A stretch of 64,000 nucleotides of DNA from sequence record LR535910.1. One strand, written 5' to 3'. The notes under the pieces are model-generated. The model was given only the letters and a program-made list of their open reading frames with translations, was not told the DNA's origin and did not search any database. Shown here piece after piece: positions 2,240 to 25,162 of the stretch; within the stretch, counting starts at the first letter, position 1, and each line of letters begins with the position of its first letter. The position numbers and the translations under genes are program-made.

Positions 2240-2788
2240 ATGTTTTATCTGGATAGCGATGGCGTTTTTGCACGCTGGCGTAAATACGTTTTATCCACAC
2301 ATTTTCCCGGAATGACGATTAAAGAGTTTAACGCATTACCTGAACTCCGTCGTCGTAGTTTGGTTCGTTCGATGTATCAGAACGATCCTGACTTGTTTTA
2401 CAAACTCGAACCAATTGAGGGTGTAGAGCGAATCCTGGAAACGGTAGATAGACTTTGCGACAGTTGGGCAATACTCACCTCTGGGTCAGAAGATCACTAC
2501 GACCACCAATTGGTTGTGGATTCAAAACAACGGTGGTTCATGAAGCACTTTGGGGTACCAGCTGACAAAGTCATCGTCACCGAAAGTTCAGGGCAGAAGA
2601 AAGCTTACGCCTCGCGAGGTAATTTGCTTGTCGACGATTATGGTCGTAACTGTCGAGAATGGATTTTGCAAGGTGGTGCGGCGATATGGTCGCGAACTGA
2701 AGAACCGAACATTGATGGTATTTGCCTCCAGTGTGAAGCATTCTACAATGACCCGATTACTTACTCGGGGACACTACTGCAAGTCTAA
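2240..2788 (+). CDS. HAD-superfamily 5'(3')-deoxyribonucleotidase (NT5C-like)
   Basis: YLDSDGV (DxD motif I), ILTS (motif II), K and LLVDD (motif IV); AAGGA SD before ATG 2240. Confidence 0.8.
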   Translation: MFYLDSDGVFARWRKYVLSTHFPGMTIKEFNALPELRRRSLVRSMYQNDPDLFYKLEPIEGVERILETVDRLCDSWAILTSGSEDHYDHQLVVDSKQRWFMKHFGVPADKVIVTESSGQKKAYASRGNLLVDDYGRNCREWILQGGAAIWSRTEEPNIDGICLQCEAFYNDPITYSGTLLQV

Positions 2789-2796
2789 GCTCCACT

Positions 2797-2840
2797 AGGC
2801 TCATCCTATCTTCGGATACGGGTGAGCCTTTTTATTTTAT
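2797..2840 (+). terminator. Intrinsic terminator
   Basis: AGGCTCATCC-TATC-TTCG-GATA-CGGGTGAGCCT followed by a T-tract. Confidence 0.8.
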
Positions 2841-2862
2841 TAATTGCATTCAAAAAGAACTG

Positions 2863-2882
2863 AGATATATATTACTTAGGTG
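2863..2882 (+). promoter_or_regulatory. Putative early (vRNAP) promoter
   Basis: AGATATATATTACTTAGGTG contains TATATTAC (phiKZ early consensus) and sits after a terminator. Confidence 0.7.
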
Positions 2883-2934
2883 AGCGTTACACGTTAACGC
2901 TTTAATCGACTATTACCCAGAAGGAGTATTTACA

Positions 2935-3333
2935 ATGACTAACCAACTACACCAAGACCCGTTTGTTGCCATGATGGTTTGTGCTAAAGCCGAGAGCAAC
3001 GAAGCCGATTTAATTCGTCTGTTGACTGATGACGAATACCTTATCTCCGAGCGCGATAAACGTTTAAAAGAACTCTACAAGCCAGAAACCGGTGAATCGC
3101 TCGGCAATCAAGACGCCTGGAAGTTTCTTATTCTTGTTGCTGATGAAACGTGGCGAGCAAAAAATCCCATCGTCTGTGATATTACAGACCTACCGTACAA
3201 ATACGGCGGACTCATCACTAGCGACCTGTATCTTAAACCGTTCTTTGTTGGTGAAGCAATGCAAGAACTGCAAGATGTTCTTGTTACAGCAACGAACACT
3301 TTGAGACGTTTGCGCGCTGAGCAGCTAATCTGA
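2935..3333 (+). CDS. Hypothetical early protein
   Basis: 132 aa; AAGGAG SD. Confidence 0.75.
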   Translation: MTNQLHQDPFVAMMVCAKAESNEADLIRLLTDDEYLISERDKRLKELYKPETGESLGNQDAWKFLILVADETWRAKNPIVCDITDLPYKYGGLITSDLYLKPFFVGEAMQELQDVLVTATNTLRRLRAEQLI

Positions 3334-3339
3334 TCTCTC

Positions 3340-3364
3340 AAAAATCACGAATCGTACAAATCCT
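3340..3364 (+). promoter_or_regulatory. Putative middle promoter
   Basis: AAAAATCAC-N11-ATCCT. Confidence 0.35.
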
Positions 3365-4509: not shown

Positions 4510-4998
4510 ATGGCTGAAGTAACTTCAATGAAAGCACTGCACAAACTGATCGCTGAACTGGACACGCCGGCAGCAACCCTGTCCGAAGACCTGGCGCTGA
4601 ACGCCGACCCGCTGGTTAAGATTTACGAAGACACATTGCCCGTAACGAAAGTTGGGGATGTGGACTATCGCTTCACACTGGAAGACGCGGACGCTCTGCG
4701 ACAGCACGACGCAAACTTCACTGAACTGTTCGGTGGCGTTGCCGGTGGTCTGATTGCTGACCGTGCGAAAGCGGATAGCGATATCGGTGCACTGGACTTA
4801 ACGCTGGATATCGGTAACGCAGCATTCTCTACCGTGTTCTCTCGCCCGGTTACTGAAAACCCAACTCAGAAAGAATGGGCAGCATCCATCTCTTACGGTT
4901 TCGGTTCTCCGAAGTCTAAAGCGTTGGAAGGCAAGCTGCGTAAAGAGTTTGCCAAGTCCATGATGGCAACTGATGAAGAAGACGAAGACGACGAATAA
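4510..4998 (+). CDS. Acidic hypothetical protein with high-expression codon usage
   Basis: 162 aa; AAGGA SD; ends ATDEEDEDDE. Confidence 0.8.
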   Translation: MAEVTSMKALHKLIAELDTPAATLSEDLALNADPLVKIYEDTLPVTKVGDVDYRFTLEDADALRQHDANFTELFGGVAGGLIADRAKADSDIGALDLTLDIGNAAFSTVFSRPVTENPTQKEWAASISYGFGSPKSKALEGKLRKEFAKSMMATDEEDEDDE

Positions 4999-5201
4999 TG
5001 ATTCCGTCCAGCCCAAAGGAACTCGCTGAGCTACTCGGGGCTAAAGTGGAATGCCATCCTAATGTGAATCCTGCTACTGGGTTACGTTGGGATGGCACCA
5101 TTGCGTCACACGAGGAAATCGGTCTCACCGTCACCTTCCCTAAACCCATGCCGAAGCCGCTGCAGTTAGAAGGGCTTGCTTCGCTATACGGTCGGAAGTA
5201 G
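4998..5201 (+). CDS. Small hypothetical protein
   Basis: 67 aa; TAATG stop/start overlap with the upstream gene; followed by a terminator. Confidence 0.6.
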   Translation: MIPSSPKELAELLGAKVECHPNVNPATGLRWDGTIASHEEIGLTVTFPKPMPKPLQLEGLASLYGRK

Positions 5202-22291: not shown

Positions 22292-22384
22292 ATCATGCGG
22301 GAGTCAGAAGCACGCAAGCTTGACCCCATCAATCGCCTGCGATAACGGGGTAGCGCATCCGTATAAACACGTTTAAAGAATTCT

Positions 22385-22460
22385 AGGAAAGTGACGCAAT
22401 TGGTAGCGTACCGGTCTCCAAAACCGGCTGTTTAGAGTTCGAGTCTCTACTTTCCTGCCA
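22385..22460 (+). tRNA. trnW: tRNA-Trp(CCA)
   Basis: Full 76-nt cloverleaf: AGGAAAG/CTTTCCT, ACGC/GCGT, CCGGT-CTCCAAA-ACCGG, TAGAG-TTCGAGT-CTCTA, encoded CCA. Confidence 0.95.
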
Positions 22461-22526
22461 CATTTAGCCAACAAGGCCATGATTCAAAGCAGAATGACAC
22501 CGAATGTCTAACTGCGGAGAATAATC

Positions 22527-22769
22527 ATGAACTTGTATTTGCTAGAACGAACTGACGATATCGGGTATGATGAATTTGATTCCATAATCGTGGCGGCTCC
22601 TACGGAGCAAGCTGCGTGTGCAATTCCTCCCGACTGTGGTCATTGGATGGACTGCCGCTGGTTACCGAAAGAGCGCTGGGATGAAGGGCTTACCCTGACC
22701 GTTACTCTTATCGGTACTACGCACTATCCTGCTGGGACCGTCGTTCATGAATCGTTCAATGCTGGCTAA
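22527..22769 (+). CDS. Small hypothetical protein, single-domain paralog of 21228
   Basis: GGAG SD; MNLYLLERTDDIGYDEFDSIIVAAPTEQAA. Confidence 0.7.
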   Translation: MNLYLLERTDDIGYDEFDSIIVAAPTEQAACAIPPDCGHWMDCRWLPKERWDEGLTLTVTLIGTTHYPAGTVVHESFNAG

Positions 22770-23043
22770 ACAGTGGGCTTCGGCCCACTAACCCTATTCG
22801 AGCCGTGATACTTACTCAGATTGTGCGGGTTGATGTCCCGCATGAGCCGGTAGCAGCTCAGACCTACGGTAGACCAATAAATCCGTAGCAGCCAGGTACA
22901 CAAAGCACCAGGTCGCTTGTACAGGATGCTGGGTATCTGACCGGTCATAACCTCATTCGATACGAGACACGTTTATGCATGAAATACTCCAGTACATCAG
23001 GATGTTGATTTCCAACGTCCGGTTCTGGGTATTCAATCATGTT

Positions 23044-23345
23044 TGGTTTACAGGCGATGGGTTTTCCCGCAAGGGCCCCACTTACAGACTGGCGTCTCCA
23101 CGACAACCGTCCCTAGGGGACAGGCAAGCACCGGCCCATTAAGCCGCTACGCTACGCCTGTAAATCCACAATCTGATAACCGAATGGGGTTGAGTTCCCA
23201 GTGTTAGGGTGACTGTGTGTCACCGTAGGCGCGGTACCTCATACGGCCGGAACGCCACGAATGTACGTGATAGCGGGTGGTGCTTGGAGGCGCTAAGACC
23301 TGACCTTGCGGCCAGGCTCAGAAGAAGAAGAAGTCCATCACCCGC
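23044..23345 (+). ncRNA. Candidate structured ncRNA domain(s)
   Basis: 12-bp closing helix 23045-23056/23155-23166, GCAA tetraloop, 10-bp helix 23273-23282/23336-23345, single-stranded (AAG)4 tract. Confidence 0.4.
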
Positions 23346-23418
23346 ATTCAGAAATGAATTTAGGTTAATTATTATTTATGGAAGTGATGAAATCGTTTAC
23401 GTGATAACTTAGTAGTAT

Positions 23419-23790
23419 GCAACGAACAATACCAGAGTGACTTTACGAGGTTACTGTGGTATATGTCGGTGCTCCGGGCAACGTGTTGCCGCAGATAAGC
23501 CCGAGGGAGCTGAGTGCACTAACACCCGCCGGGATGCACCGGCACCTTACAATGGGAGCGCTGTCACCATCAGTGATGACAGGAGTGAAGGATTCGTACC
23601 TCACTCGACTGGGCGGAAGCCTGGGCGTTCCCCCATCTTCACATCATGGCCGGCTTGCCGGTTCAACGTAGACGTCTCGTAAGAGATTTCCAGTCAGGCA
23701 ACTGATAACACACCTAAGCGTCGACCTGGACGTATGGTGTCTGGTTAAGTCCCCCGAAACGGAAACCAGTAGGGGTGTGGTACGTTGAGT
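23419..23790 (+). ncRNA. Candidate ornate ncRNA (about 370 nt)
   Basis: Begins at the G of a GTATG motif; at least 7 consecutive hairpins including a GNRA loop; no SD-bearing ORF. Confidence 0.4.
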
Positions 23791-23816
23791 GTAACTATCA
23801 TGATGCCGTGAACAAT

Positions 23817-23886
23817 GGCTTTGTAGCTCAGGTAGGTAGAGCAACCTCTTCGAGGAAGGTCGCCGGTTCGAGTCCGGTCAAAGCAA
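23817..23886 (+). ncRNA. tRNA-like element with a collapsed anticodon arm
   Basis: Acceptor GCTTTG/CAAAGC, D arm GCTC/GAGC with AGGTAGGTA loop, T arm GCCGG-TTCGAGT-CCGGT; the anticodon arm is only CCTC-TTC-GAGG; no CCA. Confidence 0.7.
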
Positions 23887-23967
23887 GAGCAGCGAAGTTA
23901 GAGGAATTAACACCCGACTCATAATCGGATATTTCGACGGTTCGAATCCGTCCGTTTGCTCGCCCCA
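23887..23967 (+). tRNA. Degenerate tRNA with CAT anticodon (Met/Ile2-type), bulged acceptor stem
   Basis: D arm GTTA/TAAC, CCGA-CTCATAA-TCGG, GACGG-TTCGAAT-CCGTC; acceptor GAGCAGCG/CGTTTGCTC with one bulge; ends GCCCCA. Confidence 0.6.
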
Positions 23968-24252
23968 TTTGTGTTACCCTTATCCCGAAGGCATTCGAAT
24001 TAAGACGCGTATCCACACACGGGTCAAGGGTAACACGAACCACTTCCGCGGTCACCGTGTCCATTGCCGCCTACCTGCATGGGCTGTCCTCCGACACGGT
24101 GACTTCGGGCCAACTTACAGGCCAGGGCCGTTTGGGTTTTTCTTACGCATCCATCCAGAGCCACCTCGCGCCCTAGTCTGTATACCCCTTTTCTGTTCCT
24201 GGTTTGCCAACTAAATCAATTAAGCCTGGTGCGTTGCCCTGGGAACAGAAAA
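23968..24252 (+). ncRNA. Three long-stem loop units downstream of the tRNA-like pair
   Basis: Stems of 14 bp (23968-23981/24026-24039), 11 bp (24051-24061/24093-24103) and 11 bp (24189-24199/24242-24252). Confidence 0.4.
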
Positions 24253-24340
24253 ACTTATTCGGTTACACACCGAACCCACCCACGAGGGATATGTCGTGGA
24301 CTACCAATAGAAGCAGCAATAGTAGTAAGAAGGAAGCAAC

Positions 24341-25162
24341 ATGTTTACAGTTAAACGTGTAATTGATGGTGACCGCATTATTACCGAACATGAAAAAGTT
24401 CGTATCGGTGACCGTAAGTCTCGTGTATTCCGCGAGGCGTTAAAGATGCTCGAGAACGAGCGATTCGACATCGTTGTCGATGATGAAAAGTTAGCCCTTA
24501 ATCCGGGGTTAAAACGCGTTGCCCCTGATGTGCCTGATCCGAACACCATGCATTTGTCTGACTACTGCAGCTGGTCGCACAGATTATATAAAAGTCAGGT
24601 TTATGCACACACGTATTTGCGGCAGCTTTTCCCCAACCTTATTATCCCCGATTTGGAAACGGTCGAGGTGTTTAACTGCAACGCACGCGAGTTTATTAGC
24701 TACGTGCTAGATAATAAGGGCAATGCTATCTTGGTACTGGACACAAATTCCCGCATACCTGATGCTGTGGCTAGCATACGCGGTGAAATCATCGGTTACG
24801 GTACTCCCCCAGAGAAATTAGGCTGGTACAAACCATCTCCTGATAGCGACATGGCGATCATTGTCTACACTCAGGAAGAACTGCAACAAGTCGAATTAGA
24901 GCCTGGTCCATCTATCGAGTTCACTGATGTCCAGGAGCAGTCGCAGTGGATTAACGGTGAGTCTGTTGTTACTGTTTTAAAAGGCGCTCGCCCTGGCGAC
25001 CGGTCAGTCGATGAACTGATTGGCGCAATGTGCATCGAAGAAGAATCTGGATACGATCCTGATAACCAGATCAGTACCGGTGCGTTGTACGAACTGTTTT
25101 ATAAAGGCGACGAAGTCTACGTGGTTAACTCTCACGGTAAGACTACCGACGTCCTTCGCTGA
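24341..25162 (+). CDS. Hypothetical protein
   Basis: 273 aa; AAGGA SD; ends YVVNSHGKTTDVLR, a pattern common in phage proteins. Confidence 0.75.
   Translation: MFTVKRVIDGDRIITEHEKVRIGDRKSRVFREALKMLENERFDIVVDDEKLALNPGLKRVAPDVPDPNTMHLSDYCSWSHRLYKSQVYAHTYLRQLFPNLIIPDLETVEVFNCNAREFISYVLDNKGNAILVLDTNSRIPDAVASIRGEIIGYGTPPEKLGWYKPSPDSDMAIIVYTQEELQQVELEPGPSIEFTDVQEQSQWINGESVVTVLKGARPGDRSVDELIGAMCIEEESGYDPDNQISTGALYELFYKGDEVYVVNSHGKTTDVLR

Follow-up and report, generated by a model that had tools for sequence, protein, structure and literature searches.

What is encoded in the 372 nucleotides (nt) that separate a TATG motif from two tRNA-like genes in a Salmonella jumbo phage? The stretch in question, positions 23419-23790, lies in a window of 64,000 nt from record LR535910.1 (the whole stretch of DNA that was analyzed, to which all positions refer), and a sequence-only reading had taken it for a single structured non-coding RNA of ~370 nt, a new class comparable to the large phage RNAs GOLLD and ROOL. 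Sequence comparison indicates that it is instead a mosaic, put together from three modules whose evolutionary histories differ: a two-domain leader, an 82-nt cloverleaf and a lineage-specific spacer. The explanation we favor, with a probability of roughly 0.7, is that the interval forms the promoter-proximal part of a T4-like tRNA-operon precursor with embedded non-tRNA RNAs, built from three independent modules.

Based on nucleotide identity, the window belongs to an SPN3US-like Salmonella jumbo phage of the genus Seoulvirus. The 1.7 kb around 23419-23790 are 100% identical to several SPFM-series Salmonella phages (Seoulvirus) and 96-99% identical to other Seoulvirus SPN3US members. SPAsTU and Erwinia phage pEa_SNUABM_29 (pEa29) are more distant relatives (74-83%), followed by Machinavirus and Erskinevirus phages of Erwinia and Salmonella. 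Relatives carry an array of 3 to 15 tRNA genes at the same locus, and this array is strongly reduced in the SPN3US clade, which has lost nearly all of its true tRNAs.

The three modules and two repeats that matter to their history are listed here.

23419-23551, plus strand: leader RNA, 133 nt, two domains, from TATG to the ACAAU junction before the first tRNA-type unit
23554-23635, plus strand: cloverleaf (‘tle’), 82 nt, from RNAalifold, the minimum free energy (MFE) fold and covariance model R1
23637-23811, plus strand: spacer (‘sp’), 175 nt, with local hairpins including GGCCGG/CCGGTT and TCTC-GTAA-GAGA
23549-23555, plus strand: first ACAATGG repeat, spanning the ACAAU|GG junction at the 5' end of the cloverleaf
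23812-23818, plus strand: second ACAATGG repeat, at the 5' end of the next tRNA-like unit

Three pieces of the interval, each distributed differently, emerge from pairwise blastn, from nhmmer and from searching a phage collection. Positions 23400-23548 extend the homology of the region upstream and are present in SPN3US-type phages, SPAsTU and pEa29. Positions 23549-23636 form a tRNA-sized block with 95% identity to SPAsTU, 83% to pEa29 and 90.6% to Asesino, while 23637-23811 are restricted to phages >98% identical to the window. According to blastn, nhmmer and both covariance models, the leader, cloverleaf and spacer stand in differing contexts in different phages. The tRNA-sized block of SPAsTU directly follows tRNA-Gln, ~880 nt downstream of the first piece, and an open reading frame (ORF) and five tRNAs separate leader from cloverleaf. 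Asesino has the 82-nt cloverleaf alone, in a slot between tRNA-Ile and tRNA-His. The leader occurs alone before tRNA-Tyr in pEa_SNUABM_29 and Machinavirus phages, and before a small ORF in SPAsTU.

A natural deletion separates the modules within the window's own species. Positions 23549-23811 are missing from SPN3US, the type phage named in the sequence-only reading, and from SEGD1, JN03, EC001, Lh1B, SaP7 and SPLA3. Position 23548 is joined to 23812 in these SPN3US-type phages, skipping 263 nt between the ACAATGG repeats, and a contig of a public run (SPN3US-type phage) shows the same 263-nt skip. Presence or absence of the cloverleaf is thus a polymorphism within one phage species (present in SPFM-type, absent from SPN3US-type phages). 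The ACAAU|G junction likewise precedes tRNA-Tyr in Caitlin.

How do these distributions bear on the proposal of one RNA? The motifs on which it was built are all present, including TATG (23416-23419, with G23419) and TCTC-GTAA-GAGA (23675-23686), along with the following.

23429-23462, 23477-23490, 23528-23543, 23561-23582, 23583-23606 and 23648-23663, plus strand: hairpins verified in the sequence
23420-23424/23783-23787, plus strand: CAACG/CGTTG, the proposed closing pair, verified in the sequence

The interval is also GC-rich as described, with a moderate rise (53-59% in the stretch vs. 43-52% in the flanks). The described tiling with hairpins holds for the sequences themselves, but GGCAA/TTGCC and GCCGG/CCGGC yield to longer-range pairs in the MFE and consensus folds; an acceptor-type stem (23554-23561/23625-23632) and a third arm (23609-23624) had been overlooked, and a complete cloverleaf spans 23554-23632. 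Folding against dinucleotide shuffles, the check named with the proposal, gives -151.5 kcal/mol for the 372 nt vs. -126.5±6.1 for the shuffles (z = -4.13, 0/100 as good), and z = -2.69 for the minus strand of 23419-23790. By module, the plus-strand z-scores are -4.78 (23419-23548), -3.05 (23552-23634) and -2.41 (23637-23811).

The overall z-score, the presence of CAACG/CGTTG in the single-sequence MFE structure and the position beside tRNA-type genes would all suit a single ornate RNA (23419-23790) closed by that pair, and since Rfam has no match to it, such an RNA would be new. GOLLD and ROOL, which are likewise phage-borne and non-coding, often adjoin tRNA genes. However, the 3' 263 nt are absent from the seven phages named above, the conserved parts lie ~880 nt apart in SPAsTU, and Asesino has the 82-nt part by itself. 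The closing helix lacks comparative support: it links the conserved 5' end with a lineage-specific segment on the 3' side, one that SPN3US lacks and that is without a homologue elsewhere, and its CGTTG half has an alternative partner inside that same segment. Likeness to GOLLD or ROOL fails as well: Rfam models are unmatched, and the interval is a smaller, 372-nt mosaic rather than one unit of >500 nt conserved whole. We therefore consider a single ~370-nt RNA very improbable. A strong folding z-score over an interval can stem from adjacent unrelated modules, which calls for caution in scans of this kind.

The deletion also bears on coding. Plus-strand ORFs of 81 amino acids (aa; 23437-23682) and 71 aa (23456-23671) exist, and the Huxley copy of the cloverleaf overlaps gp17, which is annotated as a hypothetical gene. 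These ORFs are broken in SPN3US by the 263-bp deletion, which is not a multiple of 3, and split by ~880 nt in SPAsTU, so the description of the stretch as ORF-poor is correct in effect. Moreover, stem substitutions are compensatory, indels do not keep the frame, and where tblastn weakly matches Huxley gp17 (E = 0.05), the match falls on the RNA homology. A protein-coding role for either ORF can be given practically no credence.

Rfam returns nothing in 23419-23790, either in a scan of the whole window at the gathering threshold or in one of 22300-24400 at E≤10 with permissive filters. Several known classes were considered and rejected. There is no Rfam support for a group I intron or ribozyme, and no Rfam match to Y RNA/YrlA in 22300-24400 at E≤10; a sub-threshold YrlA match in Asesino overlaps a true tRNA-Ile. 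ARAGORN finds no transfer-messenger RNA in the window, and Rfam clan CL00001 gives no non-tRNA match here. A miniature inverted-repeat transposable element was dismissed as well, the spacer being flanked by a mere 7-bp inverted repeat. Literature searches found no description of the leader or cloverleaf elements. With conserved structure and compensatory pairs in both, the two are new RNA families absent from Rfam, of a kind known since T4, and the claim of non-coding structured RNA is upheld for them.

The leader begins at a motif that is conserved across genera, and its principal features are these.

23396-23419, plus strand: promoter-proximal motif TTTACGTGATAAC ... GTAGTATG, with TATG at 23416-23419
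23429-23462, plus strand: leader hairpin 1, 15 bp
23464-23544, plus strand: branched hairpin domain of the leader, in the consensus fold

The motif is invariant in SPN3US-type phages, SPAsTU and pEa_SNUABM_29, and Machinavirus homologues have TATATATG at the equivalent position; in both genera, TATG stands a few nt 5' of hairpin 1. The late promoter consensus of phiKZ is TATG, with the G as start site (PMC4666361). Given this similarity and the retention of TATG in two genera, the 5' boundary chosen in the sequence-only reading is reasonable, and G23419 is the likely +1. Matches to the upstream motif as a repeated promoter consensus occur elsewhere in the window at chance level, and a scan for sigma-70 promoters and intrinsic terminators gave no more matches than shuffled sequences.

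Among the three modules the leader folds best (MFE -58.4 kcal/mol, with the z-score of -4.78 given above; RNAalifold consensus -54.6 kcal/mol). It is near-invariant in three Seoulvirus lineages that are ~75% identical elsewhere. Covariance model R2, built from the leader sequences of these three lineages, scores 157 bits in the window and 131-142 bits in SPAsTU and pEa29, and it detects diverged matches (25-35 bits, E = 1e-6 to 3e-4) in the Machinavirus phages Caitlin, ChrisDB, pEa_SNUABM_4 and pEa_SNUABM_9. Each of these four matches ends 1-4 nt before tRNA-Tyr, the first tRNA of the array. Across 8 leader sequences, 96.5% of cells are paired and 15/44 pairs have compensatory changes; covariation is 0.270, compared with 0.120 for shuffles (0/500) and ≤0.054 for slid partners. 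A MAFFT-only alignment of the 5' half of the leader recovers hairpin 1 with two C-G/A-U swaps.

Does the leader act only in cis? It might, perhaps together with the tRNA-like units, act on the transcript that runs into the 273-aa ORF downstream, either in antitermination or anti-pausing for the phage RNA polymerase (cf. the rrn leader and the HK022 put RNA) or as a stabilizing or regulatory 5' untranslated region. The presumed start is followed immediately by its two stem-loop domains, and at the head of the array it always directly precedes the first tRNA or tRNA-like unit, save in SPAsTU, where the ribosome-binding site of the small ORF comes directly after it; an RNA contig is also continuous from 23408 into the downstream ORF. 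On the other hand, the leader has no homology to a known cis-regulatory family in Rfam, the plus strand of the locus has no predicted terminators, and we know of nothing on antitermination for these phage polymerases. A cis role is compatible with, not exclusive of, the tRNA-operon explanation; as the sole function of the leader it seems to us quite unlikely.

The second module has the outline of a tRNA, with the following parts.

23554-23561/23625-23632, plus strand: acceptor-type stem, 8 bp, followed by CCA at 23633-23635
23562-23581, plus strand: arm 1, loop UCAG or CACUGU
23583-23606, plus strand: arm 2, UUCG cap
23609-23624, plus strand: arm 3, GGAA tetraloop

The cloverleaf comes out identical in RNAalifold, run on a MAFFT alignment, and in the single-sequence MFE fold; linker nucleotides are nearly absent. 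Model R1 scores 110.6 bits in the window and 100-111 bits in SPAsTU, pEa29, Asesino and two metagenome contigs; diverged copies (42-47 bits) are found in Huxley, pSal-SNUABM-04 and one further metagenome contig. In the alignment of 8 distinct sequences, which represent three genera, 98.1% of cells are paired, and 7 pairs show compensatory changes, 5 of them in arm 2, which is fully rewritten in Machinavirus copies with its bulged A kept. Covariation is 0.302 vs. 0.168 for shuffles (0/500). Conserved G-U pairs identify the plus strand as the RNA strand. The cloverleaf is conserved better than its flanks (90.6% vs. ~70% identity between window and Asesino) or than tRNA-Trp.

The cloverleaf shares with tRNA (RF00005) a four-arm topology, a 7-8-bp acceptor stem, an invariant U(-1)/G(+1) and a 3' CCA. 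After the terminal stem, CCA is present in 4/8 sequences, CCG in 3/8 (Machinavirus-type copies) and UCG in 1/8 (pEa29). It also takes tRNA positions in arrays: after tRNA-Gln in SPAsTU, between tRNA-Ile and tRNA-His in Asesino (4-5 nt from its neighbors) and after tRNA-Ser in Huxley and pSal-SNUABM-04. Unlike a tRNA, it has no linker nucleotides between acceptor stem and arm 1, and it lacks a T-loop (GTTCRANYC) and the D-loop GG. Arm 2 has 8-9 bp with a bulged A and a loop of 6-7 nt with U or C at would-be position 37; no 5-bp anticodon stem with a 7-nt loop, U33 and purine 37 was found in the cloverleaf. ARAGORN does not call it, and RF00005 has no match at 23552-23636 even at E≤10. Because stable loop caps replace the D, anticodon and T loops, the cloverleaf cannot decode.

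At blastn sensitivity, cloverleaf matches in the phage collection are confined to Seoulvirus and Erskinevirus records. Pattern scans recovered near relatives and one new Machinavirus-type copy. No copy was found in bacterial genomes or beyond these jumbo phages in IMG/VR, metagenome contigs and GTDB pattern scans; 28 bacterial-genome and 24 metagenome pattern matches were chance hits, rejected by model R1.

The third module behaves differently. Its folding excess is weak (z = -2.41 on the plus and -1.92 on the minus strand). No homologues were found beyond phages >98% identical, by blastn of the phage collection or nhmmer of all fetched loci, and there were no matches in related array gaps (low-stringency blastn), in metagenome loci or in a self-blast of the window. 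A tblastn search with the neighboring proteins of relatives revealed no protein relic. The spacer is lost along with the cloverleaf in SPN3US-type phages; it is lineage-specific and dispensable, and nothing supports a function for it. Its GNRA hairpin (TCTC-GTAA-GAGA) is real but unconstrained so far as the data go.

The spacer raises the question of whether the locus is simply debris, a decaying tRNA array in which cloverleaf and spacer are functionless relics with a fold inherited from former tRNAs. Consistent with this, the window's clade no longer has the Tyr, Glu, Asp, Ile, Gln and Asn tRNAs still found at the locus in SPAsTU, SPN3US has also lost the cloverleaf and spacer and is viable, and homing endonucleases churn the arrays; the spacer, with no homologue and little excess of folding, fits as well. 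However, three genera have preserved the cloverleaf, with compensatory changes, and it is the better conserved when set against its flanks or tRNA-Trp, and its loops have been exchanged for UUCG/GNRA caps rather than degraded at random. The near-invariant leader likewise covaries with its Machinavirus homologues. Decay is plausible for the spacer alone; for the locus as a whole we think it unlikely.

Evidence on transcription comes from assembled Logan contigs of public RNA-seq runs, which carry neither strand nor local depth. Contigs of two transcriptomic libraries end at 23289-23293 (once with the sequencing adapter attached), coverage is nil at 23294-23407, and a new contig starts at 23408 or 23474 and runs unbroken through the interval and both tRNA-like genes into the 273-aa ORF, beyond 24400. 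This pattern of gap and start speaks for RNA, rather than contaminating DNA, as the source of the assembly and for a transcription unit beginning close to TATG. The interval is probably transcribed on the plus strand, from TATG or nearby. The contigs support transcription of the stretch, short of proof, and an unbroken contig does not by itself establish a single transcript.

What kind of unit would this be? In phage T4, the tRNA-processing machinery also matures the species I and II RNAs, which have no known function. The T4 tRNA region yields a primary transcript of ~1.75 kb with eight tRNAs, the species I and II RNAs (function unknown) and the homing endonuclease gene segB (PMC2330249). Compared by description, the present locus is similar, with non-tRNA RNAs in a phage tRNA cluster and homing endonuclease genes in the arrays of relatives. 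We propose a T4-like tRNA operon because HNH genes and conserved non-tRNA modules occur in those arrays, the leader heads the array and the cloverleaf fills tRNA slots. The cloverleaf differs from species I/II in being smaller (82 nt), with a compact four-way junction and UUCG/GNRA caps, and the phage differs from T4 in being phiKZ-like, a jumbo phage that encodes RNA polymerases of its own and in which processing of the cloverleaf is inferred.

In such an operon, the phage polymerase would start at G23419 of the conserved TATG and transcribe first the leader, which ends exactly at the start of the first tRNA-type unit. Host RNase P might then cut the ACAAU|G junction and free the leader as a ~135-nt RNA, and 3'-end enzymes could release the cloverleaf, a small RNA that would be very stable and would not decode. 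The retained tRNA-shaped units (the cloverleaf and unit B, the first of the two tRNA-like genes downstream) may chiefly mark where the leader is to be cleaved from the downstream mRNA, and may also act in trans. As a working analogy for release of leader and mRNA, the mascRNA of MALAT1 and mitochondrial tRNA punctuation similarly place a non-decoding tRNA shape inside a longer transcript, in which RNase P/Z cleavage would part the RNAs on either side; the known cases are eukaryotic or organellar, whereas cleavage in the phage is putative. The mascRNA model itself matches at 27.5 bits, below its gathering score, solely on a true tRNA-Glu of a relative.

Homing endonucleases are a likely driver of the shuffling of array modules. 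HNH_3 homing endonuclease ORFs of ~178 aa are inserted in the tRNA arrays of two relatives.

2819-3358 of related locus L007 (phage 1252): HNH_3 ORF
2521-3057 of related locus L004 (pEa_SNUABM_29): HNH_3 ORF

The insertion point in phage 1252 corresponds to window position ~23968, and its ORF has a sub-threshold NUMOD4 match (17.3 bits vs. a 23.4-bit cut-off).

Several points weigh against the tRNA-operon explanation. RNase P cleavage and discrete small RNAs are putative: the contigs are assemblies with neither strand nor local depth, and one contig of a third, very deep library bridges 23167-23683. SPN3US-type phages remain viable although they lack cloverleaf and spacer, both of which are therefore non-essential in the laboratory. 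An encoded CCA is not universal, with the CCG of Machinavirus-type copies and the UCG of pEa29 in its place. Finally, the covariation alignments were model-fitted, which favors structure (an effect partly offset by the MAFFT-based results for cloverleaf and hairpin 1), and comprise no more than 8 distinct sequences per family.

Could the cloverleaf have a purpose of its own? Its extra G-C pair atop the 7-bp stem (8/8 sequences), followed by CCA in the 4/8 noted above, equals the G(-1):C73-CCA of the phages' own tRNA-His genes. Unlike tRNA-His and histidine-accepting viral tRNA-like structures, it has no GUG anticodon, and CCA is not present in all lineages; the histidine-type acceptor end, read from the sequence, is a lead only. 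On a bolder reading, the cloverleaf would be a purpose-built, anticodon-less mimic that retains nothing of a tRNA but a tRNA-His-type acceptor end, excised and acting in trans; with unit B it would make up a class of ‘blank tRNAs’, and the leader would be a second trans-acting RNA. It might then serve as a decoy or sponge for a tRNA-targeting defense nuclease, histidyl-tRNA synthetase, the CCA-adding enzyme or RNase P, or as an aminoacyl carrier outside translation. We regard this as rather unlikely; if true that the mimic acts in trans, interest would be high.

Phage tRNA arrays are usually annotated as tRNAs and ‘spacers’. At least two such ‘spacers’ here belong to RNA families on which structural selection acts in three genera of jumbo phages that form a nucleus (Seoulvirus, Machinavirus and Erskinevirus), and a third structured family lies just upstream (23104-23352); none of the three is in Rfam. 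The cloverleaf is a natural tRNA scaffold without any decoding or elbow feature that is conserved all the same, which raises the question of how its acceptor end is used in infection, whether for transcript punctuation, as a decoy in a tRNA-centered arms race with host defenses, or otherwise. The polymorphism between SPFM-type (present) and SPN3US-type (absent) phages makes its role directly testable.

The surroundings of the interval form a 1.57-kb gap without long ORFs (22770-24340), between an 80-aa ORF (22527-22769) and the 273-aa ORF, which starts at 24341. ARAGORN makes a single call in the window, tRNA-Trp at 22385-22460, and Rfam adds two weak matches to RF00005. These are the tRNA-like genes downstream of the spacer.

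23817-23886, plus strand: tRNA-like unit B, RF00005 40.9 bits, truncated anticodon loop, ARAGORN silent
23889-23960, plus strand: non-canonical tRNA(CAU)-like gene, RF00005 30.6 bits, closing the reduced array
3246-3356 of related locus L003 and 4921-5014 of related locus L015: homologues of unit B

Unit B is a second anticodon-less tRNA mimic. Its D and T arms are normal, and the anticodon arm is swapped for a CCUC-UUCG-GAGG hairpin. Among its homologues, that of SPAsTU has a structured insert of ~39 nt at the place of the anticodon arm and that of Huxley received a call as a tRNA-Ile(aat) with an intron. Covariation is seen in the acceptor stem (GGCUUUG/CAAAGC vs. GGCUCCG/CGGAGC). The tRNA(CAU)-like gene has an odd D arm and an imperfect acceptor stem, and is conserved across genera; in Asesino, Caitlin and others, its counterparts have tRNA-Met(cat) calls of ~33 bits. 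None of these genes encodes CCA, while CCA is encoded in all canonical tRNAs of the relatives' arrays.

Upstream of the promoter-proximal motif lie two further conserved features.

23104-23352, plus strand: structured non-coding block of ~240 nt, from conservation and RNAalifold
22975-23142, plus strand: unannotated conserved ORF, 55 aa, from protein homology

The ~240-nt block is present in 16/16 diverse Seoulvirus, Machinavirus and Erskinevirus sequences examined, with long invariant stretches that include GGTGCTTGGAG, GAAGAAGTCCATCA and ATGGGATTAAGTTCCCAG. RNAalifold gives 43 pairs, 15 of which have compensatory changes, and AAGCACC/GGTGCTT could add a long-range or pseudoknot helix. Rfam has no match to the block (22300-24400, E≤10). 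With its strong covariation, it is the most strongly supported structured RNA of the locus and probably the best candidate there for a new one. An RNA-seq contig end (23289-23291) falls inside it, and the last codons and stop of the 55-aa ORF overlap its start (~23104). Homologues of this ORF are ChrisDB gp9, Huxley gp9, pSal-SNUABM-04 008 and Asesino gp9 (30-38% identity, E to 1e-7); it has no Pfam match.

Further observations concern the arrays of relatives and the ends of the gap. Across loci L003-L016, many non-tRNA gaps of 100-300 nt (e.g., Glu>Asp, Ser>Met and Met>Glu) are 76-97% conserved between genera, which suggests a wider repertoire of array-embedded RNA modules. A search for related loci with the downstream 315-aa protein returned SPN3US alone. 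At 22513-22725, within the 80-aa ORF, assembler word depth in one RNA library is 85,000-147,000, or 20-60x that of neighboring contigs; the mRNA of this ORF may be extremely abundant, but contig depth is a poor measure of expression. On the far side, the 380 non-coding nt from the last tRNA-like gene to the 273-aa ORF (23960-24340, plus strand) are 72-74% conserved in pEa29 and partly kept after tRNA-Asn in SPAsTU, Caitlin, ChrisDB, pEa9 and Asesino, and they include a long hairpin, GTGTTACCCTT...AAGGGTAACAC.

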